Assembly: GCF_964204645.1 (NCBI RefSeq)
Contig: NC_134036.1
Span: 5,176,600-5,240,599, forward strand
DNA length: 64,000 bases
Origin: Tubulanus polymorphus
Lineage: Eukaryota; Animalia; Nemertea
Reading direction: 5' to 3'
Positions within the stretch are counted from its first letter, which is position 1. Every line of letters begins with the position of its first letter. Below are positions 5,930 through 64,000 of the stretch, in pieces. A program made the position numbers and the translations under genes. Under the pieces are notes generated by a model. The model had not been told where the DNA came from. It did not search any database and saw nothing but the letters and a program-made list of their open reading frames with translations.

Positions 5930-6530
5930 ATTACGATAAGTTACTAATCATTCAGAATTTCTCATCCCCAATAACATCATCGATTTTAGTAATATTATGA
6001 TTAGTTACCAATGAAGACCTTTTCGTTCTCAACATCTTCAACGATTCAGTAAAATTACGGTTAGTTACTAATGACGACCTTCTCATTCTCAATAACTTCA
6101 ACAATTCAGTAAAATTGTGATAAGTTACTAATGACGACCTTCTCATTCTCAATAACTTCAACAATTCAGTAAAATTATGATTAGTTACTAATAACGATCT
6201 TCTCATTCTCAATAACTTCAACGATTCAGTCAAATTATGATTAGTTACTAATAACGACCTTCTCATTCTCAATAACTTCAACGATTCAGTCAAATTATGA
6301 TTAGTTACTAATAACGACCTTTTCATTCTCAATATCTTCATCTATTCAGAAAAATCATGATTGGTTACTAATAACGACCTTCTCATGTTCAATAACTTCA
6401 ACGATTGAGTGAAATTATACATAGTTACTTATGACGACCTTCTCATTCTAAAATGAATTGATCGATTCAGCAAAATTACGATTCGTTGCTAACAATTCAG
6501 AAAAATGTGATTAGCCACTAATTACAAAAC
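5930..6530 (+). repeat. 60-bp tandem repeat array, about 9-10 units
   Basis: Units align vertically in the 60-column layout; source of spurious ORF 5952-6341. Confidence 0.95.
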
Positions 6531-9975: not shown

Positions 9976-11558
9976 AAATATTAGCCACACTAAACTATTA
10001 CAAGTAGAAAACGACCAAAAAAATATAAAAATGGACAAAATGATCTTGTAATATAGCTATTTCCAGAATCTCATTGTATTAAATTAGGCAGCCAGAAAAA
10101 TTCATCCCAATCAGTCGCTTGCCGGTTCAGACTGAATGGAAGATTGTTTGGATGAACCGGAACCGAATTTCCAATTATGTACTTCGATTTTAAAATATTC
10201 TGTTTACTCGACCGCCGATCACACATCTATATCTGTACTTCGATTTCCGATTTCAAAATCAAACCCCCTGTTTCGCTCCCGGCAGGTGTGGTGGGTCTGT
10301 AAGGGACACTCAATCGAAAAATCAAACAAAATTTACCAGCCAAATAAATAAATAATGGGGACAATCCCTATTTTAAGATCGAAAAATAGTAGCCGCACTT
10401 TACCGCGCATCCATTTAAACACTTAACATCTATCTATATTTGCCCGTTGGTGGAAACCACTACGAGCGCAGAATACGACTCGAAAAATAAACAACGTTCG
10501 CAACTGATCAAACCAAACATTTCAAAAACGAATATATAGGCCTGTATACGCGTGCAATGTGAAGGAGAAACATCTCCAGTACATTGATGACTACTAGGAA
10601 AAAATCAATGACCTCTTCATATTTTTCCGATGCCGACAGCTGCTGCGTCGTTTTTATTTTTGTACAGTCACGGGAATTGAAGTAAAATGTACAAGTAGTA
10701 TCGAATATAGTATCGATTTAAGTCGACAGATGGCGTTTTGCCACCCCACGCCGTTTCGTCCGCGGACTGTTATGGCGATAGGTTTGACTCGGGATAGTGC
10801 GATTGTGTGGCAGTTCGGGGATACGTCTAGAGGCAGGCGATGGTCTAGCGGAGTCGACAGTCCACATATTTCATCTCTTGCTAAATATTAACGAGGCTAG
10901 CGGAGACTCCTGGGAGATCCACGCGTCGCGTCTCCAGTTCGTTTTTGACCTCACAACGCTACTCCGGCGATTCAACTTGTGGCAAGTGAGGATCCACCAG
11001 GTGTCGCTAGTGTGCAGTAGCGAGTCACGATTATCATTTCATATAATCATCTTTATTTTTACTTTACAATTTCAGTTACATATAACGATTTAACAGTATT
11101 TTCTTTAAAAATTATACCTCGATTTTGACCAGGGCCGAAAAAATTGCATTTGATTGATGGGGCAGTTAACTGAAGTCGAAAACCAATTTCACGATTCTAC
11201 CTTAAAAAAGAAAACTCAGTTTATCCCTCGTATAGAAATACTTGTCAGTCTCAAGTGAAGGATTCTACATAAGATTGCTATTGCATATGACAAATGATTT
11301 TTGTTTTTCAAAAAGGGCGCTTTACCAAAATTCGAATCATATACGAACGGTCGTTACCAGGTATTTCCTTTTGTCTTACAGGCGAAAACAACCGCGCGCA
11401 TATAGTCCTGGAAATATCGTTTCGCAAACGTCGACCAGTATCAAAAAAGAAGAATACAAGCGTTAGACGAAGTAAGGGCTGAAAAAAAGAACACCTAAAA
11501 GAAAAGAAAGACACGGTGAAATTCATCAAAATATCCATCACGTCCTTCGATCCTAACC

Positions 11559-11631
11559 ATGGGCAACAGCGAGTCGACGTTGAGCTGTTTTCGGCGCGAA
11601 AAGTTGATTCACGAATTCAAAATATTTTACG
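11559..11631 (+). CDS. Alternative first coding exon 1a: MGNSESTLSCFRREKLIHEFKIFY(D)
   Basis: ATG at 11559; phase-1 donor G|gtaagt at 11631/11632; candidate UTR acceptor ttacag at 11381. Confidence 0.85.
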
Positions 11632-14600
11632 GTAAGTTTCTGATTATACCGAGTGAAAAAAAAAAACACTGAGGTCAATTTCGGAAATGGGTGGATTGCA
11701 TGAATTCAACTCCAGGACTGGTAAAAGTAGATCTCCAGGCTGACTACACAGCACGTATTCTTCCGCGAGTAGGGAGAATCGTTGATGAGCGAGGTAGAAT
11801 GTAAAATAGGTCGGCAATTCCCAAATCGTCGGAATTGTCGACAAGTAGTATAGGTCGACAGTTTGAAACCGGAAGACTCACTTCATTTAAAAGAAAACCC
11901 TCCACGATGGAACTATGTTGACCCATTATGGCCACCACACGTAGACGTAGTAATGATGATAATGATGTTATTATAAATATTGTGGTAAATACAATCAGGC
12001 CTATACGCGCGGTCGGCCGATATATCTTACTCATTACGATATAAATAGTATGCATACATATTATGTAGGCCTAAACGAAACTGAATCGTCCATTTTACAG
12101 ACACTCAGCGCGGCTATAGGCATTGCATCTCGCCTGCAAGATCGGGCTCATTTTCAGGCCCGCGTGCACGGTATTGTCTCGTTTAAATACACGCGTTTGG
12201 GACAGCGTACGACGCTTTCAAAACTCAACACCTTCGATTGACGCTTAGTCCAGTCGTATTCGACCCTTCGATGTTTGTTCGTTCGCGAACTATAAGGATA
12301 AGGATACAAATACCCGGCGATTGTTAAGTCGGACTACAGTTCGTGTATTTGGTAACTGTTATATTTCAAAATCAGAAAATCCGTTCATTAACGGTAGCCC
12401 TACGTATTTGTATCTTAGTGTATGCTCGCGCGTCGCGATTTGCGTACGAACGAAGCGAAATTTAAAAATTCGAAAATTAACGGTTATCTTAACGGGTGTG
12501 AGCTCGACGAATCGATCTCATACGAATCAATCGGGAAAAAAAACGAATACCAACATTTGAAGAAATAAAGAAAAAAAAACAGGATAAATAAGGCGACATT
12601 AATTATAGTTTCTGTTATCGCGGACGGTGTCATCGAGATATCGAGCATGGGCAATAGCAAATCGACGTTGGGTGTTTTTCGGCGCGATAAGTTGATCCAC
12701 GAATTCAGAACATTTTACGGTAAGTTTTTGAGATCCCTATAATGGAAGCGAATGATAGGAACTCCGAAACGGATAACAGCTCGCCGCCTAAATGTCTTAC
12801 AGTCGCGTGGATATGGATTGCACGCCGACTATTGCGCAACCATGACTCGACCGCACGATAGAATGATTTTGAGTGAATTGATTCATTTTAGTTATATTTC
12901 TTAATTTATGCACAAAGTAATATTGCACCGAATAATTATGAATACATTCAAATATGATCGTAAGGATGCTTGACGGAGATGCTCTGTCACGCACGTTACC
13001 AATTGTACCCCTAGTGGCCAGCGTAAAACCTTTCCTCTACGTGGATTCGAATCCTTAATGGCACATTCCTAACAGGGATTCCAATCCGATGGCATCGCGA
13101 GACTCAGCCACGTTCCTCCCTCGCAGGGACTTTGACCAGTCGGTATATCATAGCACGGTGGCGCAGTTTTTAAATCCTTACCCCAGTAGATCCATCTTCT
13201 AATAGCAGGGATCTGAAAACAAAGGATACTTTTAAACCGCTATAGCGTTCAAACAACCTGATGGTACATGTGCAATTCGGACCGTTCATTATTCGTCTTT
13301 CCAAACGTACTATCTATTTCTAAACCCGATAAACCATTATTCGGGATATATGTCGAATCATCAAATTACTTTGCGATTAAGCACGTACACGACGTATCGA
13401 CGCACTTTTGCGAAACTACATTAACCGCATTAGAACGACTCGTATCTCGAAATTAAACCGGTTAATCGCGCAGGGTCTAGACGCATTTAAACGCGAATCG
13501 TTATAACGGAATCTCTAGAAAAAGCGACATCTCGCAAACAAAGCGCAATTTCCTTTAAAAGCTCAAGGAAACATTCGCGCTTTTCTCTTGCGGTATCGTT
13601 GGATTTCGTATCTTATATAATTCAACGTATATAGCTTACGAGTACTCTTCTCCGAGATAGTACGAGCGTATTTTTATACGTCCGTTTTGACAACATGTCA
13701 TCGTCGTAATACGCGCGCCGGTACAAAAACAAACCGCGCATATATCCGCGGCACAGGTTCGGCTCTCGAACAGGTGGCTAAAATCGCACGCAGGTTTCGA
13801 CGCGCGCGGCCAACGAATCAAACCGTTGTTTATACGATAGCAAAATTGAAATCTTTCATATAAGCAGCGTTATGCGATAGTATATCGCGATAAAGGATTG
13901 TTAATTTTCACATATAGGCTTTGTTATCCGCGCCGAGTTGCCGCCTAAATACACGATCGGGCCTATTTCGGACCTGTCGGTTGTTTTGTTTACATCGCGT
14001 GCTGTCGGGACAGGGCTCGACGCGGCCTGGACTCGATATTTTGACTGAATGACTGACTGACCGACCGACACATTGTCAGATCACTAGCACCGAGTGTATT
14101 AGCTTGTTTACTATACAAACGCTATAGCTTGTAAGAAATATATTTGGCCGTCCTGGTTACACTTGGATTAACCCGGCTATCAAGGGATAAAAGTACTTTA
14201 CGGTAAAGTCGGACTATATTGAGATTGTGGATGTTTTAGTAACCGTTTACAGGTGAAAATTCCAATTCGGATTCGCGTGGATTTGTGCGTGTGTTAGAAA
14301 TTTCGATATTCGAAAATTCAAAATATAACCGTTATTCAACGTGCGCGTGATTGGATTTTTGAAAAAATATAGTCGACGCGCTATAGTGAAGTTTCGAGAG
14401 AAGAGAGGATATCCGAAATTAGAATAGTAATCGATATCCTCGATAGCGATGGGCGCTAAGTTAGCCAAGGCGTTCGAATCCGGCTCGGGACCGCAGCCGC
14501 TGAGCGCTTTCAGAAAACATAAACTAACGCACGATTACCATACGTTTTTCGGTAAGTATTCCTATTGACCTCAGTTGAAAGCTGGTTGATTCGCGGTAGA

Positions 14601-17600
14601 TATGGGTATGCGAGGGGACGGTTTTAAAGGTTTGGGTCGTTGATGAAATCGTCGTCTTATTTTTTTCGGGTTAGGGCAGGTAGGAGCAATCCCAGACTGA
14701 AACGCTTATCACTGTATTACTGTTCGTTTATGCTAAACAGGATATGAACTACAAACACCAGAAATCAGACATTTTATCAGCGCGCTTTCGCAAAATGGTC
14801 TCGCAAACATCACAAAATGGTCTCTTGAAGGGTGTTTTCAGCATTCTTAATCGAAGAGATCAACTACTAACACTGGACATTAGATATTTTATCGGCGCAC
14901 TTTACTACCTGCAGACATTTGGCTTGCTTTAGGCACGCTTTCAAAAAACTTATCGTCCACACATAACATGTCGTTCAGCATTTTTGAATGAAAATTGATT
15001 ACTAATTTCAGACATTAGACATTTTTATCAGTGCATTTTCAAAAACTGATCGTCCATGTCTTCATTTCATTTTCATTGTCCCACAAAAACATGTTTTGCA
15101 CAGAATATTCATTCATTCAATTCTAACAGTAGATGGCGTCGTGCCTTCACGCGTGTTTTGCATTTTTGCATTTAAATTTGTACTTACAAACACCGGACAT
15201 CAGACATTTTATCGGCAAACTTTCAAAAACTGGTCGTCCACGCTACACGTGCTTTCAGTGTGTCAACCGACACACTTTTGATTGAAATTCAAATTGAGAC
15301 ACCATAAATTAGACATTTATCAGTCTTTATACATCCAAGCGATCATGAACCATTGATTAATCTCCGAATGGTTTTGCGCTGCGGATTGACGCATGTATCA
15401 CACACAGAAATAGAGACAAATACCGTGAAATGGTAACGATTTATTTCGGAGAGCTTCCGAATTTATAAATCATCTCAACTTGTTTATTTTCTAGATCTGA
15501 ATAAAGATGGCGTTCTTGAATGGAAAGACTTCGAAACAGCTAGAACGGTATTATAACTAAAACTGTATCTTTACTGAGGTCGCCTCATTCTCGACTACTG
15601 CAACTTACTTTATGATTAGTAACTAACGACGACCTTCTCATTCTAAATAATTTCAACGATTCACTAGAATTATGATTAGTTACTAATGACGACCTTCTCA
15701 TTCTAAATAATTTCAACGATTCAGTATAATTATGATTAGTTACTAATGACGACCTTTTCATTCTCAATAACTTCAACGATTCGCTAAAATTATGATTAGT
15801 TACAAATGACGAAATTCTTATTCTCAATAATTTCAACTATTCAGTAAAATTATGATTATTTACTGATGACGACCTTCTCATTCTAAATAATTTCAACTAT
15901 TCAGTAAAATTATGATTAGTTACTAATGACGACCTTCTCTTTCTCAATAATTTCAACTATTCAGTAAAATTATGATTAGTTACTAATGACGACCTTGTCA
16001 TTCTCAATAATTTCAACGATTCACTAGAATTATGATTAGTTACTAATGACGACCTTCTCATTCTAAATAATTTCAACGATTCAGTATAATTATGATTAGT
16101 TACTAATGACGACCTTTTCATTCTCAATAACTTCAACGATTCGCTAAAATTATGATTAGTTACAAATGACGAAATTCTTATTCTCAATAATTTCAACTAT
16201 TCAGTAAAATTATGATTATTTACTGATGACGACCTTCTCATTCTAAATATTTTCAACTATTCAGTAAAATTATGATTAGTTACTAATGACGACCTTCTCT
16301 TTCTCAATAATTTCAACTATTCAGTAAAATTATGATTAGTTACTAATGACGACCTTCTCATTCTCAATAATTTCAACGATTCACTAAAATTATGATTAGT
16401 TACTAATGACGACCTTCTCATTCTCGATAACTTCAACGATTTAGTAAGATTAAGATTAGTAACTAATGACGACCTTCTCATTCTCAATAATTTCAACGAT
16501 TCACTATTTTATGATTTGTTACTAATGATGAGTTTTATTTTCTGTGCAGCATATTTGTCAATTGAGTAAATGGAAAGCGTGCGATGAACGTTACGATCGT
16601 ACTCAAAAACTGTTCATAAAAATCTGGGAGGCCCTGTCGACAATCGCCGACAAGAACTTCGACGGAAAAATATCCGAGGAGGAATGGGTAAGCGCTGGCC
16701 ATAATATAAGATCAGATTGAAATTTGAAATACAGTTAACTCTGTCTGTTACTGCGGTTAAATTGAGACATTCTACCCCGAGTTGGCGTCAAAAACTGAGC
16801 AAGAGTTTGCGAAATACAGTAGACTCAGTCTCTTACTGCGGTTAAGTTGAGACTGGTAAAATATTATACCGCAAGTTGGTGTCAAATACTGAGTTTGTGA
16901 AATACAGTAGATCTTACTGCCGGTGAAGTTGGGACAGATTCTAACCCGAGTTGGCGTCAAATACGGATCATGAGTTTGACGAATATAAGGCCTTACAGTC
17001 GACTCCTTCTTTTACCTGGCGGAGTTTGAAGTGAAACGATGGCGGGGTCGGTGCCAATAAACAGTTAACATTTGCTTGTTTTGCAGGTTGAAATGTGGGA
17101 GACGTACAACAGGAAAATGTACGAAGAACAAGAGAAGGCGAAAGCCGAAAAGCGGCAACCTGAAAACGTGCTACCAAAATGGCTCGACATGTACGTGGAG
17201 TACAAGTTCAGCCTGTACGATCGAACGGGTAAGAAGTGTTCGTCGTTTTGAGGTCGCTTCTAATCAGTCGGTGGCTACAGCGGCAAACGACGATTCCGTC
17301 CGTGGCATGCGAGGATCCGCCAGGCGCGCTAGCGGTTGTACTCGCCAATTCATACAGCCTCTGACGTAAATCGATAATCCTATGTAGACTCTCACCATAC
17401 AATGAGTGGAAAATTTCTATGATATATTTATTTGATTTGATCGAAGATATGCGTACTCTTGAGTCTATTAAGTCTAAGAATTAAATGGTGGCTGATTCGG
17501 GCCATGTTTAAAAAATAGAAATATGAAACGCGGTCTTCACTGATTCGGGTCACATGAAGTCTATCTTCAGGAATGCTGAAGTATGAATACTGAGTATATT

Positions 17601-19858
17601 CCTGAAGCTGACTTTTAGTTTATAGTCGAAACGTTGAGTAAACTACCAGTTCAAGTGAACATTTTCGGATTCTATTTTCTCGTCTTCATTGTGGGATTCT
17701 CGTTAAACTGCCCTAAAGGTTTTTGGCCAGTCAGCGGGACTCGCAGAACCCGCTTATCACGCCTCATCCCGCTGGCGGTGCCGCTTTCATGTCGCGGATA
17801 CGTACCTATTTTCCGTCTTCTGATTTCTTGTTATTTCTTTCTTTCTTTCGAAGGCGACGGCAAAATCGACATCGAGGAATTCGAATACGTGCTCGGCGAT
17901 TTCGGAGTGAAGAAACAAGAAGCGCGCACGGCGTTCACCATGTTTTCACAGGCAGGTTTACACGACGTATGTATCTCTGGTGTTAGTTTCTCTCTATATC
18001 CATTCGTATATCGATCGATCTCATCCAGAAACAAAATGGCCGCCTCCATAAATTTGCAAAAATCAATACTCGATCACCGTTGAAAGTCGAATCCGCGTTC
18101 GAATCTGAAACTATTGGACGGTTTTCGACCGACTGGTCAACGGTACCCGTAAAGGAGCCATTTATTTCTGGCGGAGACTTGACGCGAGTGTTTACCCGCA
18201 GCTCACGGCCACCGCTTCAAAGATTCGATGCGAAAGATATTATTAATTCGTTTGATTTTTTATAAATGTACGTTTATAGTTCAATTTCAAATGAAAATGT
18301 CTCCGCCGAACACGTGTGAAGTGTGGACGATCAGTTTTTGATAGTGCGCTGGTAAAACGTCTGATGTCAGGTGTTTATAGTTTTTATTTTCAACTGAAAA
18401 TGTCTCGGACGAAGTACGGAACATTCAAGTCCGGACGATCACTTTTTGAAAGTATGCTGGAAAGAATGTTTACTGTTATTTTCAATATACTGTCAGACTG
18501 AGTGTGGCGAACGAGTTTTTTTCATACTTTTTCATCTTTTATGCAATACACGATATAGCATGCTTGACTGCACTGCACGGAAACGTCCGGGGACATACAT
18601 GTAATATACAGTAATTTCATTAGAAATAACGATCCCAAATCGAAAATGAACACTGATTAAAAAAAAGGGAAAAATGCAAATCGACGATTCCACTTATGGC
18701 AAGCGAGGATCCGTCAGGTTCGCTAGTAGTTACCTCGCTCAATTTCTACTACATTCCACTGAAATCGGGCTAAACTTCTCACTTAAATGAGTCGATCAAT
18801 AACGAGATCTATACCAATCACTAAGTTAATCAAATTAATTTGAAAAAAAAATGAATTTAAAGTTTATTCGGTGGGCCCTGTGTGATGAATTATCAAATAA
18901 GATATTTCACGAAAATCAAGATCAAATAATTTTAGCTTCGGTTTTAGCCTAGCACATACAGCATGATTATCTACATGTTCATATTACTTTTTAATAGCTT
19001 TTTTTCTAGCTTCAAATATCTATCTATACTTTCACCATTCTATAATTAATGCATCTTTTTCGGTGATCCGCGTTTATTATCATTTTCTAAGTACGAATTT
19101 ATTTATTCATCATTTTTCATTTAAAAAAAAAATCGAAAATTCTAAGATTCGACATAGATTCTAGCGTCTTCTTTTATGATCTCGTTTCTTGAAATGTAAT
19201 CGTTTGAGAATGATTAATTCGCAATTGATAATTGGCGATGTAATGTGCCTCGAAAATACTGCCATCATTGATTTTTCTTGAACGAACGTCAATTTCAAAT
19301 GCGCACCAGGTTGAGGTAGGACGATCAATATAACAATTAGTTTTAAAAGAGTCCGTTCGCTCACGCTCGGAGAAAGAGTGATACGATTAGAACGCACTTT
19401 ATACAAATTTAAAACATTTAAAACAAAATCTATTAATCAAGAATTAAAATCATAATCCATATCTATTTGATAATGATAATGATAATATATTTTCTTGATA
19501 TAGCCGCATTTTCTACATAGTAATCTATGAACTTTACATAAAAAAAGAAAATTAAAAAATCGAAAATATATTTCTCAGTAAAATGCAAATCATCGAGATT
19601 ACTAAAGATATTCATCCAGATTAAAGTATTTATTAAGATTAAAATACACGATGCGTTTCGGACAAAGTTATAATTTGCATATGATTCTTTTTCAATTTTC
19701 AGAATAACGAACGCGTCATCGACTTCCCCACGTTCCGCAAACTGTGCGAAGAGTACTATACGTCGGACGATCCGAACGCCTTGGGTAACTTCATAACGGG
19801 GAAGCTGGACTTCAAAGTGGACGAAGACGGTGACGACGAAAAGGGAAAGAAAAAATAG
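11559..19858 (+). CDS. Calexcitin / sarcoplasmic calcium-binding protein-like EF-hand protein (219 or 229 aa depending on first exon)
   Basis: Shared exons 15495-15547, 16550-16687, 17087-17228, 17854-17951 (GC donor) and 19703-19858 join in frame to any of three first exons. EF loops DLNKDGVLEWKD, DKNFDGKISEEE, DRTGDGKIDIEE; fourth loop degenerate. LPKWLDMYV and GNFITGKL resemble calexcitin motifs. Confidence 0.92.
12647..12719 (+). CDS. Alternative first coding exon 1b: MGNSKSTLGVFRRDKLIHEFRTFY(D)
   Basis: Paralogous to exon 1a, same 73-nt length, phase-1 donor G|gtaagt. Confidence 0.85.
14449..14551 (+). CDS. Alternative first coding exon 1c: MGAKLAKAFESGSGPQPLSAFRKHKLTHDYHTFF(D)
   Basis: ATG at 14449; phase-1 donor G|gtaagt; LSxFRxxKLxH motif shared with 1a and 1b; candidate UTR acceptor ttacag at 14253. 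Confidence 0.88.
14743..15330 (+). repeat. Dispersed ~110-bp repeat family in short degenerate arrays
   Basis: Core aactacaaacacc...agacattttatcagcgcactttcaaaaactgatcgtccacac; also at 18265-18500 (-), 22760-23010 (-), 36320-36640 (+) and 37895-38440 (+). Confidence 0.8.
15585..16530 (+). repeat. 60-bp tandem array (~16 units) with a 360-bp higher-order duplication, filling an intron of the EF-hand gene
   Basis: Variant units at 15661, 15721, 15781, 15841 and 15901 recur at 16021, 16081, 16141, 16201 and 16261. Confidence 0.95.
16720..17035 (+). repeat. ~92-bp tandem repeat family
   Basis: gagtttgtgaaatacagtagactctgtctcttactgcggttaagttgag...; also at 37180-37625 and 47045-47230. Confidence 0.85.
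17555..17710 (+). mobile_element. Penelope-like terminus remnant with a degenerate hammerhead-like core
   Basis: ctgaagc-tgact...agtc-gaaacgtt, a short upstream inversion (cttcaggaat...attcctgaag) and tgtgggattctcgtta. Core is CUGAAGC rather than CUGANGA. Confidence 0.5.
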
Positions 19859-20294
19859 AAACGATTTTTTTTTATCGTTCAGCGATATCTTCGCCGAGTT
19901 ATTGTATACTAGAAAAAAAAGAATGTAAATCTCTTAGGTCACTGTTATTGTAAACAAGGATTTATTCGGTGGCTGGAACCGGCAACAAGTCGGGTATAGA
20001 TTTCTTATGAAAATTTCTAAATTTTTCTAAAAGTTTTTTTTTGTGTCTAAGAATGGGATTCGATTCCCTAATTGCGCCTGTGTTGATTTTCGAAAAGCCG
20101 GTTCGTAAAACGCAGGGCAAATTACTCTGTGCATAACCAGGGTAGTTTTGAATACACGCATGAATAGCGTTTCTGTCCCCTTCCCATCGAAAAGGGTCAG
20201 GCGCTTGTACCGTTTGTTTTCAGGGGATTAGAGCCTGAAATAGAGCATGGAAGGGCAGACACTTCCTTAACCATTCAAAATAGTAGTGGTTAGA

Positions 20295-20560
20295 TGCCCC
20301 TGATTGTCAAGAATAGTCTCTGAAATACGGTAAATAACTGCCCGCTGATTGCCGGGTACAATTCCTGAAAATGGTCTACTGTCTCTGATTGTCAGGAACA
20401 GTCTCTGAAAATGGTAATTGTTTTGTGATTGTCAGGAACAGTCTCTGAAATGATTTACTGTCTCCTGATTGTCAGGAACAGTCTCTGAAAATGGTTTGCA
20501 GTCCCCTGATTGTCAGGGACAGTCTCCGAAAATGGTCTAGTGACTTATGATTGTCAGGAG
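20295..20560 (+). repeat. ~40-bp tandem repeat downstream of the EF-hand CDS
   Basis: Units cctgattgtcaggaacagtctctgaaaatggt; relative at ~31810-31960. Confidence 0.85.
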
Positions 20561-22051
20561 TCATTTGTTTATCTTGTTCTAGTCACGCATCGTACTATAT
20601 CTACCGGTGTTGATGATGAAGCCAAAAAATAAACGCGCCATTATACTAACCATCGAAGTACCGGTAATAGTTTTTCGTCAAATTGTCCTATTTTCTTCTG
20701 TCCATAAGTTAACGGTTTCTTAGAACCCCATCGAATTTCGAAACGAAACTAAACGTAACATCCGTCGAGCTTCCACCCGTAAAATCAAAATTTCTACGTC
20801 CCCCAGCGTAAATCGAATAACGATAATCTATTAGAGAAAATAGTTCATAAATAGTCGATCAACTTTTGTATACAAAAATGTTAAATCGTTCTTGATAAAT
20901 CGATTACAATTCACAAATCACTTAGTAATTCAGAAAATCTTCGCGAATACGATAATTAATTGATTTATGAATATTACATGTTCCATAAGCCCTAAATTTT
21001 TATCGTAATCTTATAAATCATTATTATCATAATTTTAATGTTGTACGTTACGTTTTCATAACCATTCCGAATATGAATTATTTCGTCTTCATCTATACGT
21101 GTATAAGTAAATCGTTGTTGTAAACGTGTCATTCGAAAAAGAATCGATACTAAGCGTGGTATGTGTACATGTATTTAATGAGTGTAAAATCATAACGATA
21201 TCGTGTACAAATATATGAATAAGTATACATACAAATCTAGTTTTTTTTGGTGTTCTCCCGATGCGCTATTATTACGAACAGAAAATATACAAATATACCC
21301 AGCTTTACTCGGACAAACTGAGGCCGGCGCAGTCCGAATTAAGGATATGAACATTCTGATTCGGAGTCGGAAACTCGCCTTTCTTGTACGTAATTTTTTC
21401 CTGGCTTGAAATCGACGATACAAGTCATCAGTCGCGTTATTCTATCGCGTTTTTCTTTAAATCGTTATCTCGTAGCCGTTGATTTAATTTTCGAGTCTTA
21501 GTTTTCGGAAAAGTGTCGGAACTCCGACTTATTCAAAATCGGACTTTTTCTAAGTAGTGGGTTTTTTTTCTCACTGCCCACAGATCCGACTTACGCAAAG
21601 TTTGCATATTATATTCGTATAGGCCTTCTAGCGATTCAGAGTACGAATCAGGATATCAGACGTATATTTCGTACCATCTTATTACATTCCGAAATGGGCT
21701 GGGGTGTCATTGATTGGTCGAGATAAGGGTATATAAATGTATCTGTGCTTGGAGATGCCGTGCGCGTGTGAAAAGATTTGGTAATCTTTTCCATTGTAAG
21801 ATACAGCGAAATTCGCAGAAGTTGATGTAATATCCAAACGATGACTAACACTTAGTCAGACATTGAATCAGAAATAGCGTCTAAAAATAGAGAAACGACT
21901 AAACTAATGCGACGAATTAATTTGAATAAATGTATTCTTCATAATTAAAAGAAAATAAACAACTATCATTAGAACTGTTATCACCACACATGTATGTTGT
22001 GTAGACAGATACATATATTTCACAATTTAGTTTTTAAAGTGCATACTTTCA

Positions 22052-22444
22052 TTAGGCTAAACGATTTGATACCTTGTTTCTCCTTTTAGCTGAGATTAAT
22101 GCAGCTGTCAATTTGAGTGCCTGTACCAACCCTCTCAGAGACGATCACCTTTTCAACGACGAAGTCTGGGACAAACGCGTTTATTTCATAAATGGCATGT
22201 TTTGGGAAATGGCGAATGCCTGACGAACGTCTGAGCAGGGGTGTGTACAGACAGCAGGTTTGATAGCTGCATTGATGTTGACCCAGCCGGCCCCTTATCT
22301 ACATTACTTTATTTCAATCATCATCAGGCAAACCATAACAGACCCAGCTGCTATACGTATATAAACTGAGTAAAAACCTTATTGCAGTTTACAAAAGTGA
22401 CCCGGCCGATTAGGAGCATAACAAGGTATCCTTTCTTTGCCTCA
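22052..22444. mobile_element. MITE with GATACCTTGTTTCTCC subterminal inverted repeats, just downstream of the SPC25 stop
   Basis: ttaggctaaacgatttgataccttgtttctcc ... ggagcataacaaggtatcctttctttgcc; same family as 41481-41707. Confidence 0.6.
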
Positions 22445-22455
22445 TAACCGGGTTT

Positions 22456-25400
22456 TCAAAGTTTGTTTTCGGCGACCAAGAGTTTAAAACGTTTTCTCAT
22501 TTCGACGACGAATGATCGCAGGCTGTTCGTCGTGTTCAGCTTGTCGACCAGTTCCTCCAGACCTACGACCTCGGGACAGCAATCCGATACTATAAGCGAA
22601 TAGAGAATGAAATATTGTAGCGTTAAAAATAGAGCCTTATATAATAAACGGATGAACGAGCCGAACACTTTCGACCGAAATAAAATATCTCGGTCTGAAA
22701 CCTAAAAACCCCTATTCATATAGCGGCTAACAGTGTGAGAGCCTGGATTAAATTTTTGAACGTATGCTGTTAAAATGTTTCTGTAGTTAATTTTCAATTA
22801 AAGTATTCGACCCATGCGAAGTGTGGTAGATCGGCTTTTGAAAAGACCGCTAATAAATTGTCTAATGTCTGGTGTTTGTAGTTTATTTTCGTTCAAAAAT
22901 GTCTGGCCACGAGAAGTCCATTACAGAAGTGTGTACGGTCAGTTTTTGAAGGTGTGCTGATAAAATGTCTAATTTCTGATGTTTGTAATTCGGTTTCAAT
23001 TAAAACTGGTATGAGCATGCTGAAGAAAAACGTCGAAGATCAAAACTGTAAGCGTGGTAATGTATGCGCCGAATATCACGCGGAGGGAGTTCAGCAGGGT
23101 TCAACTGGCAACGGATTGATATTCGCGTGAACATGAAATTAAAGTTTTATTTCTCATTAGAAATAATATCCGACCGCATACCTTCGTAACTGTTTTCACC
23201 GGTCAGACGCACGGAGAAGCAGAATCGTTTGTCGGGCGCCTTCTCGTCGACGTTCACGAACGCGAACTGAAGTTTTTCCCCTGAAAGGAGAACGTAAACG
23301 ATTACTACATCTGTAATCATTAGCATCGCGCTGCAGTATCCGATAACGGCATCTAATACAACGGGAAGAGGACAGCGCAATAATCGTCAATAGAATTACC
23401 GCGGACCACAGGCTGCGCGCCGAATAACCAGCTGCAGGTCAAAGGGCAAACGTTTTTAGAAGACCCCGAAGTTCACGCGGCCAGGCAATTAGAACCCGTA
23501 TCAAAACGATGGTTCTTCGCAAAATCTTTTAACAGGGTTTTTGCAAGAACCTACTTGAGCAGGCTCTTCAAAAAGAAAAACCGTAAAAGCCTTCCTCCGC
23601 AGGGGCAAGGCGGAAGAACCATTTTGTTGTCGGAGTGCGTATGCGCTCAAAAACTGGGTTGAGTACCGTCCCTAGATAATGATAACACTCGTAGTTGATA
23701 TTTTCGTCTGTCCCCTATAATTAGCGAAAGAAAGGAAACGCTTACCCGCTGTTTTCTGGATATCTAAGCCGAGATATTCGCGGTAGCATTGAACGCCGAT
23801 TTGCAGCTCTTTCAGTATGGCTTCCGTACAATCGAGCTGAGTCGAACAAACTGTCGTTTGCAAATATTCGAAAAAAGAGAGAAAAAGAGTACAAAATCGA
23901 AATGAACGCATATATTCGGCGCGGGACAATTCCCTAATCTGAGATAAGTATCATTCAAGTAGAATGACCACGCTCAAACGTGGAGGATAGATGATATAAT
24001 AAAAACCAACTATATATGTACAGATTTTAAAGCTCACACTAGAGGTCTTATCATAGTAATGTCATCATAAATCTTTCGATTAGGCCTAAATGAATTATTG
24101 GTGTTAGAACTTTTGAATCTGTATACGAAGCGGGTTTTTATCATACCATAAGGATCACCCTTAAGGATCATGATGGCTGTTAGTCAACAGCCGAACCGTT
24201 GTGGTTTTGTTTTAGTGAATTACACTGTGTCCAGTGTACACGGATTAGAATGTCTCATTCGACTACTAGAAGAATGATCCTTATAAATGAAGAAATCCCA
24301 CACTTCGAATTAAATTATAGGATGGAATTTATTATTTTGAAACCACAACGAGTGTTTATAACACAACCACCAATAGTGTTGATTCGACAACTAATCATCC
24401 TTATGTATCACTGTAACTTACGTTGCGTTTGCGCGCTGGTCTCCTGTTCGGTGTCGATCAGTTCGTTGGCGAGCTGTTCTTTTTTCATCAACAACTGATC
24501 GGTCTCGCGTCGCACGGCGTCGATGCCCGACTTCAGATCCTCCAGACACTTCGACTTCGCCGTCAAGACTGCACAGCAGCGTCGAAAAATACCAGAGAAC
24601 TATCTCAAGTTTTGTGATGCAAATCGTATGGTAAGGTAAAGCATTTACAATTTTTCACCACTTTCGCTCGGGAAAGACTAGAAATCTTTCCCGGACATCC
24701 CGGCACCCGCCAGGGTTCTTACAGATAAGAGATTTCAAGATTTCCTGATATTTCCGTGATTTTCACTGACCCTTGGACAACAAAAATTCCCTGTTTAAGT
24801 AATACAAATTGTATTAAACATATACCCTCAGTCCTGGACTGTTTCTTAATACATGTATTAAGACTAGAGTTTCAAATTCCAAAAGTGTCGGAAAAATGAA
24901 TCCGGAATTCCTCCAAATTTTCCAGAGCCCTGATATGTTGAACATTTTCCGACATTTGCCTCCGACAAAGATGCATTTGGCCCGTGAGATATGAGGCCAG
25001 GGAAGCTGCCGTAGCCATATACACAGCTATTAGCGGAACCGGCTTAATACATCGAACTTCAAACCCGAAAATACATAGGCTTATTGTTCTTTTTAACCGA
25101 TATTCCATCATTAGAATTGACTTTTTTGAAGAAATTATCAATTTGTTACAACCGATAAATTGTTATTTAACTGAGGTTGTATCAACAAGGTTCCACTGTA
25201 TTGCCTTGGAGATTCAAATGATTACTCCAAAGTATTGTACGCTAACAATCGGTAGGCCTTAATGCATGAAATAATACACACTGTACCTTCTTTATGTTGC
25301 GTGGCTTTCTCCGAATACTGATTCAGACTGGCCTGTAGCGCGGCAAGATCCTCTGAAAATTTAAATGCACAGTCACAAATCAGGGACAGGTCCTATCACC

Positions 25401-27841: not shown

Positions 27842-28140
27842 CATAAATAAAAACGAAGACAACGTTAGTAAAAATTATTGTTTATTTCTGAATGAAAATT
27901 CCTCACCGAACAAATTGATGCGTAATAAAGGTAGATAAACCGATTATTAACGAATTTACGGACCAAAACATCGCACGGAGAGCAGGTGTGACAGACAGTA
28001 GTTAAATTAGTGCCGATCTCTAGAAGTGTATCCATGCACTTATAATAATAATGATGCCTCAGGCGTATACCCACCATTGGGTTTATGAAAAAAGTCTCGG
28101 CCCACTTGATCGTGAAAGTGTAACATAAGGTAAAAGGTAA

Positions 28141-29028
28141 AAGTAAACATAAGGTCTTTGCATCATAAATGAAGAAAAAGTAAACATAAGGTCTTTGCGT
28201 CATGAATGAAGAAAAAGAAAACATAAGGTCTTTGCATCATAAATGAAAAAAAAGTAAACATAAGGTCTTTGCATCATAAATGAAGAAAAAGTAAACATAA
28301 GGTCTTTGCATCATAAATGAAGAAAAAGTAAACATAAGGACTTTGCATCATAAATGAAGAAAAAGTAAACATAAGGTCTTAGCGTCATAAATGAGGAAAA
28401 AGTAAACATAAGGTCTTTGCATCATAAATGAAGAAAAAGTAAACATAAGGTCTTTGCATCATAAATGAAGAAAAAGTAAACATAAGGTCTTTGCATCATA
28501 AATGAAGAAAAAGTAAACATAAGGTCTTTGCATCATAAATGAAGAAAAAGTAAACATAAGGTCTTTGCATCATAAATGAAGAAAAAGTAAACATAAGGTC
28601 TTAGCGTCATAAATGAGGAAAAAGTAAACATAAGGTCTTTGCATCATAAATGAAGAAAAAGTAAACATAAGGTCTTTGCATCATAAATGAAGAAAAAGTA
28701 AACATAAGGTCTTTGCATCATAAATGAAGAAAAAGTAAACATAAGGTCTTTGCGTCATGAATGAAGAAAAAGAAAACATAAGGTCTTTGCATCATAAATG
28801 AAGAAAAAGTAAACATAAGGTCTTTGCATCATAAATGTAGAAAAAGTAAACATAAGGTCTTTGCATCATAAATGAAGAAAAAGTAAACATAAGGTCTTTG
28901 CATCATAAATGTAGAAAAAGTAAACATAAGGTCTTTGCATCATAAATGAAGAAAAAGTAAACATAAGGTCTTTGCATCATAAATGAAGAAAAATTAAATA
29001 TAAGGTCTTTGCGTCATAAATGAAGAAA
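28141..29028 (+). repeat. 37-bp minisatellite, ~24 near-identical copies, in the DYM 5'UTR intron
   Basis: Unit aaacataaggtctttgcatcataaatgaagaaaaagt; variant units recur at 222 bp (6 units) and 555 bp (15 units). Confidence 0.97.
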
Positions 29029-35100: not shown

Positions 35101-38100
35101 CACTGATTCATCATACTGTGCGGTGTAGACGCGCTGAACGGGTTTCGATCGCGTTTCACGTTTCCTGATTTTTCAGAGCAAGACAGTCAGACGTCGTCGG
35201 ACCCGACGGAAGCGGTGGCCACGTTTAAAATCGACTACTCGCAGCTGTACGACGCGATGTGCCAAACGCTGAAAGACGACCAGACGACGTTGCTGCTTTA
35301 TACTCTGTTACACCGCAACGCGCACGTCAAAGCGTTCATACTGTCGCGTACTAACGTCGACCAGCTGGTAAGTGAGAATTAGATTGCGCTAGACTCGAGT
35401 TAGATCTTTGAAAAAAAAATTTTGCTGGCTTGACAGGACGGAGTTCGGCGTTACTGTAGACTCGGCTCGAGTCTGATATTTTGATTTGAGAGTGATATCT
35501 GAGTTGTATCGTACAGTAGACTCTCAACAAGTCTGATCTTTTGACTCGAAAGCGATGTCTGTGAGTTGTATGGTACTGTATACTCCCAAGTCTGATCTAT
35601 TTACTTGAAAGTGATATCTGAGTTTGCTGGTACAGACCACTCTGTTCAAGTCGAATTTTTTGACTTCAGAGTGATATCTGAGCTGGATGATATCTGTTAG
35701 TTGGATAGTAGACTCCGCTCAAATCAGACTTTGTTTATCAGATCAAGTTTTGACTTGAAAGAGATGTCAGTGAGTTGGATAGTAAAGAAGACTTTGCTCA
35801 TGTTGGGCCTTTTTAGCCTGAATTCCTTTCAACTGACCAGTCCACCGATTGGAAATTCGGGTCTTATCATTTAGTGTTCTTAAGAAAACAGATTTCTATT
35901 TTCTATTGTTATTCCCCGGTAGGTGATGCCCGTTTTGAAGATCTTATATCACGCGCAGGAAAAGAATTCTCACCACATTTACATGGCGTTGATTATCATA
36001 CTAGTCCTTAGCGAAGACGAAGTTTTCAACAAAAGCATTCACGAAATGGTAAGTCGCGCGTCCCACACATATGCGAAATAGGTTTTAGTTTATAATCCTA
36101 AAGCATCGATGTATACAAGATCCAGTTCCGCAGTGGTGAGTTAACTCCGAATTACAATTCGGTGATTTTCGATGAGTTGACTATAAGTCTATGGAAATGG
36201 GTCCTTGCCGTCATCATTGTGCCCCGAGGAAAAGATTGTTTGCTTCCTCCGTGGATATACAGGTCTCCAGCCTGGATACAGCATCCCCTTAGATGTTTGT
36301 CATTCTTTATTCTTCTAATTTTTGATCGTCCACATTTACATGTGTTCAGGAATTCACCTTAATTGAAGAAATTTCTAATTGAAAATGTACTACAAACACC
36401 CGACCTTAGATGTTTTATCAGCGCACTTTCAAAAACTGATTGTCCACACTTGACATGTGTTCAGTGCTTCACCTGAGACATTTTTAATCGAGAATGAACT
36501 ACAGACATTTGAATTTTATCCGTTTATTTTCAAAAACTGATCGTCCACACTCAAATGTGTTCAGGACTTCACCTGTGACATTTTTGATTGAACATGAACT
36601 ACAAACACCGGAAGTTAGACTTCACCATGGCACTCGTTTTCAAGATGTCGATTTCGTTTTTTTTCAGCGTTTGAAGAATATAACGTGGTTTAAAGAGCGT
36701 CAGATTACGGAGATTACACTCGGAGGATTACTGATTCTCGTCGTAATACGTACTATACAATTCAACATGACCAGAATGAGGGTACGCAGCACGAATCATA
36801 TCTATCTCTTTGAAAATTTCACGCACTCATATCTATTGCAATCCATTGATGGAATCAACTTACTTCGAAAAGTTTCTAACACGCTTTGACATATTGTGTT
36901 GATATTGGGTTTGTGCATGTAATTGTGATTGACAAAAAATGTCATCCTAAAGTATATGCAATCGGGATTAAGATTATATTGTTTATATCTAATGGTCTTC
37001 TTTTATCTGTATTTTCTCTTTTCTAGGACAAGTACTTACACACGAATTGTTTGGCAGCGCTCGCGAACATGTCCAGTCAGTTCAAAGCTCTGCATCCGTA
37101 TGTCAGCCAAAGATTAATCAGGTATGACCGGAGCAATAAAAACAAAATTAAGTTTAGTTTGATATTCAATTGAAGAAAATCTACTGGATTCTGTCATGTA
37201 CTGCGGTTAAGTATGAACTGGTAAAATTCTACCACGAGTTGGTGTCAAATACTGAGTAAGAGTTTGTGAAATACAGTAGACTCTGTCTCTTACTGCGGTT
37301 AAGTTGAGGCCGGTAAAATTCTACCCCGAGTTGGTGTCGAATACTGAGTAAGAGTTTGTGAAATACAGTAGACTCTGTCTCTTACTGCGGTTTAGTTGAA
37401 GCCGGTAAAATTCTAGCGCAAATTAGTGCCCAATAATACTAAGTAAGAGTTTGGGAAATACAGTAGACTCTGTCTCTTACTGCGGTTAAGTTGAGGCCGG
37501 TAAAATTCTAGCGCAAATTAGTGCCCAATAATACTGAGTAAGAGTTTGTGAAATACAGTAGACTCTGTCTCTTACTGCGGTAAAGTTGAGGCCGGTAAAA
37601 TTCTACCTCGAGTTGGTATATGTTGAAATACAGCAAACTTCAACTGACCGAGACTCGATACTTCCTTTAGTAATAATCATCATTGTCGATTTTTCGATGG
37701 TTCGTAATTTTCGCTACGCATCTTCTCGATTTGCAGCCTATTTTCACAGCTGTGCAAGAAGCACACAAAACTGATCGAACAGATACAACACGCGGCGTCG
37801 CAGGAAACGCGCAGTGTCGAAAGCGGCTCCGAGACCGACCTCGAACAGGAACACGTAAGTGACACGCATGTTTATCGAACGACATTCGGTTCATGATCGT
37901 CTACACTTCGCATGTGTTCAGTATTTAACCTCAGACATTTTTGATTTGAAATGAACTACAAACACTATATATAGATTTCATTTGCACACTTTCGGAAACT
38001 GGTTGTTCACACTTCACATGTATTCAGAATTTCGCATTGAGATATTTTAACCCTTTCAATGCTGACTAATCAATACCCTATAGTGCTGGAGATAATTTGA

Positions 38101-51618: not shown

Positions 51619-54600
51619 CTATTTATCTTTATGATTTTGGCTGCGTTTAATTTTTGCTCGTATGGATTTCATATCGATAGTCAGTATTGTGTAAAGAAGG
51701 GGATTGAGGGACGAGTTGATCGGTAAGAAAAGAACCGCCAGCCAAGCCGCCACTTGATTCGGTATTTCTACCCGCAATACCGCGCAAAACTGAACGGTTA
51801 TTATCGGCAGCCAGCAAAATAAATTACAAAGATTTATTACCAAACTCCTGCGTGCTAAAATCAGTTCTGTAGGGTCGATTCTTCCCGAACCGGACCTGCT
51901 TCCAGATACGAGTCTGTACATTTGAACATAAGTCGCCATTATCGTAGCGAGTACAAAGGAGTTGGATAATGAAAAAATAGCGAATGAATATTGCCAGGCG
52001 TTGACATCGATTGAAATTAAATTCATCGGTAAACAAACTCCGGTCGTACCGTAAAAATTGCTTCCGAAGTATTGAAATGGTGTAAGAGGTAGTAATACAA
52101 TAACACACAAGACAATCCAACATGTGCAACAAATAATGCACACATATCTTAGAGATGTAATCGGGCTTCCAGAAAATGGATTCACGATATTTGAGAACCT
52201 ATGACGCGTCATGATGAGCAAAAATAATAATGAACCTTCACAAGAAATAGTTACCACTACTCCAGCAAGTCGACAGAATCCACTGTTCGTCCATGATTCC
52301 GAATTCAGAAAGTAGATACCTTTATAAGTATGATCGGCTCCAGCGATCAGAAACAAATACATAGACATCATAAAATCACACACAGCAATATTAATGATGA
52401 TGATGTCTGAAGATTGATTTGAGGAGGAAAATCGAATTCCTCTAACGCGAAGAGAAATGACAATTCCGTTAGCCAGGAAACTGAATGAAGCGATGACCCA
52501 AATGATAGCTCTGAGGGCTGTGTTACCCATCAGATCAGAACAGGAGGAAAATTGATCAGCTTCGGGGAGGCACCGGTCAACGTTCGGAGCCATGCAGCAA
52601 AATTTGTAAGCGTCAGACATTAAAGAGACTAACGATGTCAGATTGTCGAAAACATTTCTGTCGACAGAAATAACTTTGTAGTTGTTGGTTATATCAAGAA
52701 TTTCAAGTGAAGTTAATCCAGAAAATGCGTATCGTGAAATATGATGAATTCTGTTGCCGCTGATATTCAGCGATTGTAATGTAGATAAACCCCTAAACAC
52801 ATTCCTACCAAGTGTGAGCAACATAAGTTCGCGAAGGTCAAGAACGTTTAGTGACTTCAAATCTGAGAATGTATCGCCATCTAAATCACGTAATGGATTT
52901 TCAGTAATCAATAGCACTTTCAAACTATACAGACCAGTGAATGTATTTGGTGATAATGATGTTATGTTGTTATATCTCAGGTCTAATGTATGTAGATTAT
53001 GCAGGTTTGTGAACGAGTTTGGTAATATATAAGACAATTCATTAGAGGAGATATTGAGCATGCGCAAATAGACATATGGAAACAATGTCGATATGTCCAA
53101 GATAATTTTGTTATTTGACAAAATTAAAACTCTAGTTGATGCCGAGAAAAGACCAGTAATATTTGTTAAACCAGTATTGATACAATCAACCAAATGACCT
53201 TGACACTTACAAGCTCGAGGACACGTGACGTTACAGAAAGCCTCGTCATCAATTGTGTGCTTACAATTTATGACACCATCGCAAACTTCAGTTTGTGGAA
53301 TACAACGATTTTCCTGACCACATTTAAACATTCCTGGACATAATAATGTCTCGCAGTTTTGTTCATCTTCTGAATTAGGACAATCTGATTGACCATCGCA
53401 CACCTGTCTGATTGGTATACAGTACGATGCTGGACATTTTGCAGTACCAGCTGGACATTCAAATTCTTCACATCTCAATACGTGTTCAAGATTTCTACAA
53501 ACTGGGAAACCATTTGTCATTCTTTCTAGAATACATATGTGACGTCTTGAATAACAATGAGGAGAATTGAAAGAACATCTTTGTTTATCAGGTTTTGCAC
53601 AGAGATTTGTGAAGTTAGTTGTACAGTAGTTTTCATCATTGCAATGAACCTCGGGATTCACTGTAATATTAGTAGTTGTTACTAATTCATCTTCTTCAAG
53701 GCTTCCACTACAATCCACGACACCATCCTGATACAACTGCCAACTGACACACTCTCCACTATTACACAGGAACCCCTGACACAGTTCAGTAGTGCATCCC
53801 ATTTCATCAGAGCCGTCGTTACAATTCGTGAATCCATCACATTTGTTAGACCTACTGATACATTGACCACTTTTACAGCGAAATTGTTCGGACAAACACG
53901 GGGGATGAATACACGAGTTCTCATCAGAAATATCCTCACAATCCTGTATGAAATCACAGAAACCACTTATTGATATCAACTGACCATCATCGCATTGAAA
54001 CTGACTGTGTAAATATATACCCGTACAATTAAATTCATCTTCACCGTGTCGACAGTCGTGTCTGGAATCACATACGCGATGGTCGCTGATACATCTTTGA
54101 TCGTTACATTTAAACTGCCACGATTTACAACCGCTTATGGAAGATAACTCTTCATCAGTTACATTATATGAACACAAAACAGAATGCACTCTATCTGTTT
54201 GATTATTCCAGGGTATCAATACCCAATTAACCGTATGATTATAAGTGATCTCATTCCTGGTAACAAATGGTTTTATTATCTTCCATTGGTTCTCGGAACC
54301 ATTCGTTAATATGGTGCCATATTGATGCTGATAATGAATTCCGGAAATCAACGTTTCAGCGTGTATCTTTTCCTGCATTATACCTATTTCACCACGGATT
54401 CCTTGACACATTTTTCTTGCTTTCCCAATATCTAAACTGCGGTTTTCGTTCCATTCTGTCAGTATCTGGTAACAATGCCCATCTATACTAAGCCAACCTA
54501 TTGTACAAGTTGCATTTATTGCATTACCTTTAAGGATGGGTTGTTTACTAGTTTGAGATGTAGCAGTTTTTGTTGAATTTCTCTCTCTTCCAGTAATATT

Positions 54601-63400: not shown

Positions 63401-64000
63401 CATTATTTGTTGAATTGCTTTCTATTCCAGTTATATTTTTATTGATGTCGATTCTTTCTGTTTCGCAAATGAAACTCGTGTGAACCTCTTCGATTTCGCA
63501 GGGGAATCGAACCCAGTTCGCTGATCCTCGTGGATTATTCAGTATCATCGCTGTACACGGCATATTGACGTCGTTTATCGGTTGTTTCCTGAGAGGAGAT
63601 ATCAATCCTTGCATAACTTCTGGTATCGTGTCGTTATTTGTAGGTTCATACCACTCTGTGTAGCTCATTGGTTTTCCATCAGTCCACGTGTAATGACCAG
63701 TCCCAGGCTGAAAAGTTAACTACAGTCATTTAGCAATGTGTACAATTCACATTTACTGCGGTATGGCCTAAAATGAAATACTACCTGCAGTTTTAATCCA
63801 ATCATCATCATGAGCGCCTTCTGTGAATACGCTTCGTAGATCAGAGGTTTCATAGCGAATAACCTTTTAATGTTAATCACTTCCTGTTCTGAGTTGATAC
63901 TGAGTAGATGTCCCGCGTACTTCTGTTTACAATACAATTCAGCATTCTCCCAATTCAGTCGTCTATCTGTGATGTATTTTACGCATGAAATTCCCGAATC
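60456..64000 (-). CDS. GRL101-like GPCR, tandem copy 2 (5' part outside the window)
   Basis: Last exon 63707-60456, 77-nt intron 63784-63708, preceding exon from 63785 to the window edge; collinear with copy 1, same-length last exon and same intron position. Confidence 0.92.

Follow-up and report, generated by a model that had tools for sequence, protein, structure and literature searches.

Tandem paralogous 5′ exons that are each spliced to one shared constant set of exons are found in the clustered protocadherins and in UGT1A, where the variable exons are many and large and each has a proven promoter. In KChIP1–4, alternative promoters and 5′ exons produce variable N-termini (with N-myristoylation, S-palmitoylation, or other membrane or transmembrane motifs) that set the localization of the proteins (PMC3973911). 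Here, we analyzed a calexcitin-2-like gene of the palaeonemertean Tubulanus polymorphus in a stretch of 64,000 nucleotides (RefSeq assembly GCF_964204645.1, contig NC_134036.1, positions 5,176,600 to 5,240,599 of the forward strand), which is called the window below; all positions are those of the window unless another sequence is named. This single gene has three paralogous start exons ahead of one constant body. We consider it probable that they are used one at a time and give three N-terminal proteoforms, likely with isoform-specific anchoring or partner choice.

The KChIPs are the closest known analogue, because in both cases constant 3′ exons encode an EF-hand core and the N-termini vary. 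However, the KChIPs belong to the NCS family, whereas the gene studied here belongs to the SCP/calexcitin family. The variable exons of the KChIPs are also mutually unrelated and lie ahead of the core, whereas the start exons described here are tandem paralogues that are all of the myristoylation type and each include a structural helix of EF-hand 1. Compared with the variable exons of the protocadherins and UGT1A, they are very short and number only three to six, and their promoters are putative. The locus introduces no new principle, since the KChIPs already combine a core of EF-hands with N-termini that vary and are acylated, and since RefSeq lists the isoforms. For the initial annotation of this DNA, an arrangement already documented and conserved in annotated orthologues would have counted against its reading, and the arrangement is indeed public as isoforms X1–X5 of T. 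polymorphus and X1–X6 of Lineus longissimus. What the gene offers is a Met-Gly start of the acylation type that is conserved across protostome relatives, in an exon that has been multiplied in ribbon worms, and this provides a testable handle on membrane targeting.

Calexcitin is a classic, poorly understood, learning-related calcium sensor that is said to move to membranes. It binds calcium and has been proposed to act on K+ channels or ryanodine receptors (PMC13042319). The calexcitin of the squid Doryteuthis pealeii (PDB 2CCM, 4NDB) and the nemertean protein have the same fold, in which EF-hands 1–3 are canonical and EF-hand 4 is degenerate. They differ in that the nemertean gene has a Met-Gly tail before the EF-hand 1 helix and multiplies the corresponding exon three to six times. 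The crystallized squid calexcitin is treated as a soluble protein; yet isoform X2 of Octopus calexcitin-1 starts with MGNETSS.

Three start exons and one constant body

The coding parts of the three start exons (1a, 1b, and 1c; Table 1) all open with ATG GGC on the + strand when the DNA is read directly. A single acceptor, ttttctag|AT at 15495, fits all three; it finishes the Asp codon and is followed by LNKDGVLEWKDFETART. In its anatomy, the gene therefore combines a set of 5′ exons that each carry an ATG and a donor with a single acceptor and body common to them all. Each of the three ATG codons has an A at −3 and a G at +4, and each is preceded by an in-frame stop (for 1a, a TGA at 11517) with no earlier in-frame ATG, so a longer N-terminus is excluded. 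Exon-by-exon tblastn across the window detected the start exon three times, with no fourth copy, and exons 3, 4, and 6 once each, and a six-frame search of the whole genome returned only this locus and no second one.

The results of tblastn within the window indicated that the start exons are paralogous beyond chance, with an E value of 7e-10 between 1a and 1b and of 4e-4 to 1e-3 between either of these and 1c. Inside the exon, 1a and 1b are about 85–86% identical (z 7.7), whereas the identity of their 200-nt flanks (51–54%) is at the level of shuffled sequences. Furthermore, the coding differences between them are fewer at nonsynonymous than at synonymous sites (pN 0.12 < pS 0.29). Because the similarity ends at the exon borders and pN is smaller than pS, both copies appear to have been maintained. 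The ATG and the open frame have been retained in all three copies, each of which ends in phase 1 at the same donor sequence, GTAAGT.

RefSeq contains five calexcitin-2-like isoforms of T. polymorphus, X1–X5, which equal the exon translations joined at exactly these junctions and form one 90% cluster. Exon 1c starts X1 and X2, 1a starts X3 (four accessions) and X5, and 1b starts X4; the pentapeptide AGLHD is present in X1, X3, and X4 and absent from X2 and X5. Isoform X2 has 229 residues, which correspond to 1c and exons 2–6 (P0070). The second difference between the isoforms arises from two exon 5 donors that lie 15 nt apart: the GC donor CAG|GCAGGT at 17951 omits AGLHD, and the GT donor GAC|GTATGT at 17966 adds these five residues to the degenerate fourth EF-hand. 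When the sequence was read for calcium-binding loops, EF-hands 1–3 had the canonical loops DLNKDGVLEWKD, DKNFDGKISEEE, and DRTGDGKIDIEE, and the fourth site, SQ[AGLHD]NNERVIDFPTF, had no ligand pattern. For alignment and folding, the database proteins that match the exon translations (P0070 and P0088–P0091) served as the spliced products.

Table 1. Positions in the window of the exons of the calexcitin-2-like gene of T. polymorphus.
Feature	Position	Length	Strand	Description
Exon 1a, probable 5′-untranslated part	11382-11558		+	putative; behind the strong acceptor tttccttttgtcttacag|GCG
Start exon 1a, coding part	11559-11631	73 nt	+	MGNSESTLSCFRREKLIHEFKIFY + G; phase 1; donor G|GTAAGT
Start exon 1b, coding part	12647-12719	73 nt	+	MGNSKSTLGVFRRDKLIHEFRTFY + G; phase 1; donor G|GTAAGT
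Start exon 1c, coding part	14449-14551	103 nt	+	MGAKLAKAFESGSGPQPLSAFRKHKLTHDYHTFF + G; phase 1; donor G|GTAAGT
Shared exon 2	15495-15547		+	completes Asp25; loop and exiting helix of EF-hand 1, DLNKDGVLEWKDFETART; in 5/5 RefSeq isoforms
Exon 3	16550-16687		+	EF-hand 2, DKNFDGKISEEE
Exon 4	17087-17228		+	linker helix and beginning of EF-hand 3; ends in phase 1
Exon 5	17854-17951 or 17854-17966		+	loop of EF-hand 3, DRTGDGKIDIEE; two donors
Exon 6	19703-19858		+	degenerate EF-hand 4, C-terminus, stop codon

The family of the protein was examined at the levels of sequence and fold. Among PDB entries, exon 3 alone matched juvenile hormone diol kinase (JHDK; 6kth, E 4e-5) and calexcitin (4ndc, E 3e-4). 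Full-length relatives were obtained from an exhaustive HMMER search with the same exon, and one of them, used in turn as a query, gave 47 calexcitin-2-like proteins, including isoform X2 of T. polymorphus; when the Tubulanus protein was the query of another homologue search, no additional entries from nemerteans or transcriptomes were found. By sequence, the full-length RefSeq protein falls among the calexcitin-2-like proteins. A Pfam scan of the single exons returned only a sub-threshold EF-hand_5 match, the pieces being too short. In the AlphaFold model of isoform X5, which was built with 56 relatives (mean pLDDT 88), residues 1–9 form a flexible or disordered tail, residues 10–24 form the entering helix of EF-hand 1, and the loop Asp follows at position 25. 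The best Foldseek match of this model was squid calexcitin (4ndb_A; E 7e-14, TM 0.94, rmsd 1.4 Å, about 33% identity), followed by silkworm JHDK (6kth/7pjd) and then amphioxus SCP (2sas). The gene encodes a protein of the calexcitin/SCP fold in which three EF-hands are canonical and the fourth is degenerate. The positions of the EF-hand 1 helix that face the core are kept among the start exons (F-R-R/K-x-K-L/I ... E/D-F/Y ... F-Y/F), whereas variation occurs in the tail and at some of the remaining positions of the helix.

These results bear out most of what the initial annotation had read from the letters alone. The three Met-Gly exons that end in phase 1 at G|gtaagt and share the acceptor at 15495 are seen by direct reading and in the five RefSeq isoforms, and the searches of the window and the genome agree that there is one set of downstream exons. 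The assignment to a calexcitin-like EF-hand gene is supported by the match to 4ndb and by the RefSeq name, and the modeled helix agrees with the proposal that each start exon encodes the entering helix of EF-hand 1 up to the loop Asp.

The introns of the gene also contain repeats. High-copy interspersed repeats lie between the start exons and downstream of 1c (11732-12019, 13028-13171, and 14612-15331); within them the depth of the genomic contigs, about 40 at baseline, rises into the thousands and up to about 39,000, and many joints among internal sub-repeats were found there. Intron 2 contains a 60-bp minisatellite (15610-16528, 15.3 copies), and the same minisatellite occurs about 9 kb upstream (5959-6492, 8.9 copies), with shorter matches near 2065-2304.

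The Met-Gly start in relatives and its predicted acylation

In the alignment of the 56 relatives, the start column contains Met-Gly in 48. The PROSITE pattern PS00008, G-{EDRKHPFYW}-x(2)-[STAGCN]-{P}, which is a permissive pattern for myristoylation, is satisfied in 44. The taxa with Gly2 include molluscs, an annelid (Owenia), nemerteans, a centipede, and ticks, as well as the Octopus calexcitin-1 isoform mentioned above. All nine nemertean start exons, three from Tubulanus and six from Lineus, fit PS00008; the matching residues are GNSEST in 1a, GNSKST in 1b, and GAKLAK in 1c. Because Met-Gly occurs in 48/56 relatives and the nine nemertean exons fit the pattern, Gly2, and with it myristoylation, is probably ancestral to the calexcitin-2-like subfamily and not special to this gene. 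In the literature searched, no paper ties calexcitin to myristoylation or describes such a cassette of start exons.

The residues near the Gly differ between the start exons. Exon 1a is acidic with Cys10, 1b has Lys5, and 1c has Lys4/Lys7 and a 10-residue spacer, so that the second signal beside a myristate would differ among the three isoforms. By analogy, these variants resemble the logic of other acylated proteins, in which myristate is combined either with palmitate or with basic residues. Two of the Lineus starts contain a Cys closer to the Gly, namely X4 (Cys5, MGNNCSS) and X2 (Cys6, MGNTQCG), and appear to be better candidates for dual acylation than 1a, whose Cys10 is atypical because it lies at the start of the helix. 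A Ca2+-myristoyl switch of the recoverin type is speculation; what the model has is a disordered tail at residues 1–9 only.

The claims of the initial annotation fared less evenly here. It had noted the myristoylation consensus in 1a and 1b, and according to PS00008, 1c, with Ala6 and Lys7, fits as well. In contrast, its premise of a family usually considered soluble applies only to the crystallized squid form, Gly2 is no oddity given its frequency among the relatives, and its suggestion that Cys10 of 1a is a possible palmitoylation site is not favored by the position of this residue. A survey of exon number in orthologues, which it had proposed, found six start exons in L. longissimus and one MG exon in molluscs.

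The orthologue in L. longissimus has RefSeq isoforms X1–X6, which differ in the start exon alone. In locus L001 of OU343005.1, six tandem MGN start exons were mapped at 10001, 15506, 17018, 18754, 20568, and 22528 of the locus; all end in phase 1 at G|GTRAG donors, and one shared exon 2 follows at 27998. The cluster spans 12.7 kb of this locus (10001-22687). Since the six-exon cassette has the same phase-1 junction, the cassette is conserved in nemerteans. Exon 1c of Tubulanus and the Lineus exon nearest to exon 2 are reciprocal best matches (10/17 core positions), and both have long tails; 1a and 1b are as similar to several distal Lineus exons as to each other. These relationships hint, over the 17 positions compared, that at least two start-exon types are older than the split between Tubulanus and Lineus.

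The molluscan calexcitin-2-like genes (Crassostrea, Pecten, Haliotis, Littorina, and Pomacea) are orthologous to the nemertean gene, share its MG exon, and likewise show N-terminal isoform diversity. However, they have a single MG exon that has not been duplicated; instead, an upstream in-frame Met-Cys exon buries the Gly, or the MG exon is skipped. In the oyster, the long and short forms are both present in many transcriptome assemblies. The long isoforms of gastropods and bivalves start with MCLVNLF, MCFEWIY, MCFGLGQ, MCWDFLK, MCLGNCC, or MCLEFLR (P0133, P0136, P0138, P0120, P0099, and P0048, respectively). Judging from these starts, the conserved Cys2 could be an alternative S-acylation site in place of the buried Gly.

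A wider interpretation, which we offer tentatively and consider doubtful as a whole, is that the ancestral myristoylated start exon of the calexcitin-2-like gene was expanded in nemerteans to a small cluster of variable exons, of which Tubulanus has three and Lineus six, and that at least two types, one proximal and long and the other distal and short, already existed before these lineages split. Such a cluster would encode an acylation code of myristate with Cys, myristate with Lys, or myristate with a long spacer, which would direct the sensor to different membranes or partners in different cell types. If this were true, the near-universal Gly2 of the protostome relatives would imply that the association with membranes, channels, and the ryanodine receptor that has long been ascribed to calexcitins is based on a lipid anchor.

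Promoters, splicing, and alternative explanations

The acceptor at 11381/11382 lies 177 nt upstream of the ATG of 1a, and its polypyrimidine score (0.74) equals that of the constitutive acceptors of the gene. A search of the 600 nt that precede 1b and 1c gave no acceptor of similar quality; the candidates there (ttaattatag and cctcgatag) are weak and have no good pyrimidine tract. Together with the four RefSeq accessions of one 1a protein, this suggests that non-coding 5′ exons probably often precede 1a, which would then be internal, and that 1b and 1c are probably true first exons with their own promoters. It could instead be supposed that all three are mutually exclusive internal exons, selected by splicing behind a promoter and a 5′ exon that they share. 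The acceptor upstream of 1a and the protein common to the four accessions would agree with this, as would the single MG exon of molluscs, whose internal position can be demonstrated in the long "MC..." isoforms, but the weak candidates upstream of 1b and 1c would not, and we consider a purely internal arrangement unlikely. The mixed picture is the most likely one. Where the initial annotation attributed a swap of both the membrane anchor and the EF-hand 1 helix to promoter choice, each start exon does encode its own tail and helix, but promoter choice is only a proposal, given the acceptor of 1a. A TAACNGTTA palindrome located 120–290 nt upstream of 1b and 1c was also considered as a shared promoter element and was rejected, because its count in the window was not significant (9/100 shuffles reach it).

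Protein homology can be enough for a gene predictor to propose a start exon, a search of sequencing runs returned no RNA run that contains the locus, and one possible RNA run gave no read support there (11300-15605). It might therefore be argued that the isoforms are annotation artefacts and that a copy, or even two of them, is a relic of duplication that is not used. We regard this as very improbable: the ATG, open frame, phase, and GTAAGT donor are intact in all three copies, the similarity between 1a and 1b is limited to the exon while the flanks are saturated, and a distant nemertean, L. longissimus, has a six-copy version of the cassette. A different objection concerns the Met-Gly start itself, which may have been kept for the context of the start codon or for N-terminal stability, so that the isoforms would differ in the EF-hand 1 helix alone and hence in calcium affinity. 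A GGN codon after the ATG does supply the favored G at +4, the helix residues beside the loop vary between the start exons, and PS00008 is easily satisfied. Nevertheless, a G at +4 does not demand Gly, and yet Gly is kept in 48 of the 56 relatives, with positions 3, 6, and 7 of the pattern also matching in 44. Starts of the MGNSKS and MGNE types are, moreover, those of proven myristoylated EF-hand proteins (recoverin and calcineurin B), which counts against an explanation by start context. We judge this explanation to be quite unlikely.

Several points weigh against the proposal that the three start exons give differently anchored isoforms. The splicing proposed for them is based on RefSeq models and conservation, and the possible RNA run yielded no contig over 11300-15605, an interval that stops short of the minisatellite in intron 2; the other sequencing runs behave as genomic DNA, with contigs in this interval that continue through the start-exon donors. 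The permissiveness of PS00008 lowers the value of a fit to it. Owing to the strong acceptor upstream of 1a, the interpretation as first exons chosen by promoter may not be strict for this exon, and the TAACNGTTA palindrome was not found near the Lineus exons. Taking these points into account, we continue to prefer the reading in which one calexcitin-2-like gene uses its start exons one at a time. Each exon would be spliced singly from its phase-1 donor to the acceptor at 15495, leaving the body identical, and would supply a flexible Met-Gly tail, most likely myristoylated after removal of the Met, together with the entering helix of EF-hand 1. As a likely outcome, the isoforms of this single calcium sensor would differ in membrane anchoring or in their choice of partners.

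Other features of the window

Two further satellite arrays were found in the window, at 28139-29028 and 37199-37617, the first with a 37-bp unit in 24 copies at 95% identity and the second with a 95-bp unit in 4.5 copies. A direct duplication, with a spacing of about 8.83 kb, relates 51621-55169 to 60458-64000, and includes 300 nt at 91% and 220 nt at 86% identity. It may represent a tandem duplication of a gene or of a block of exons that runs past the end of the window.

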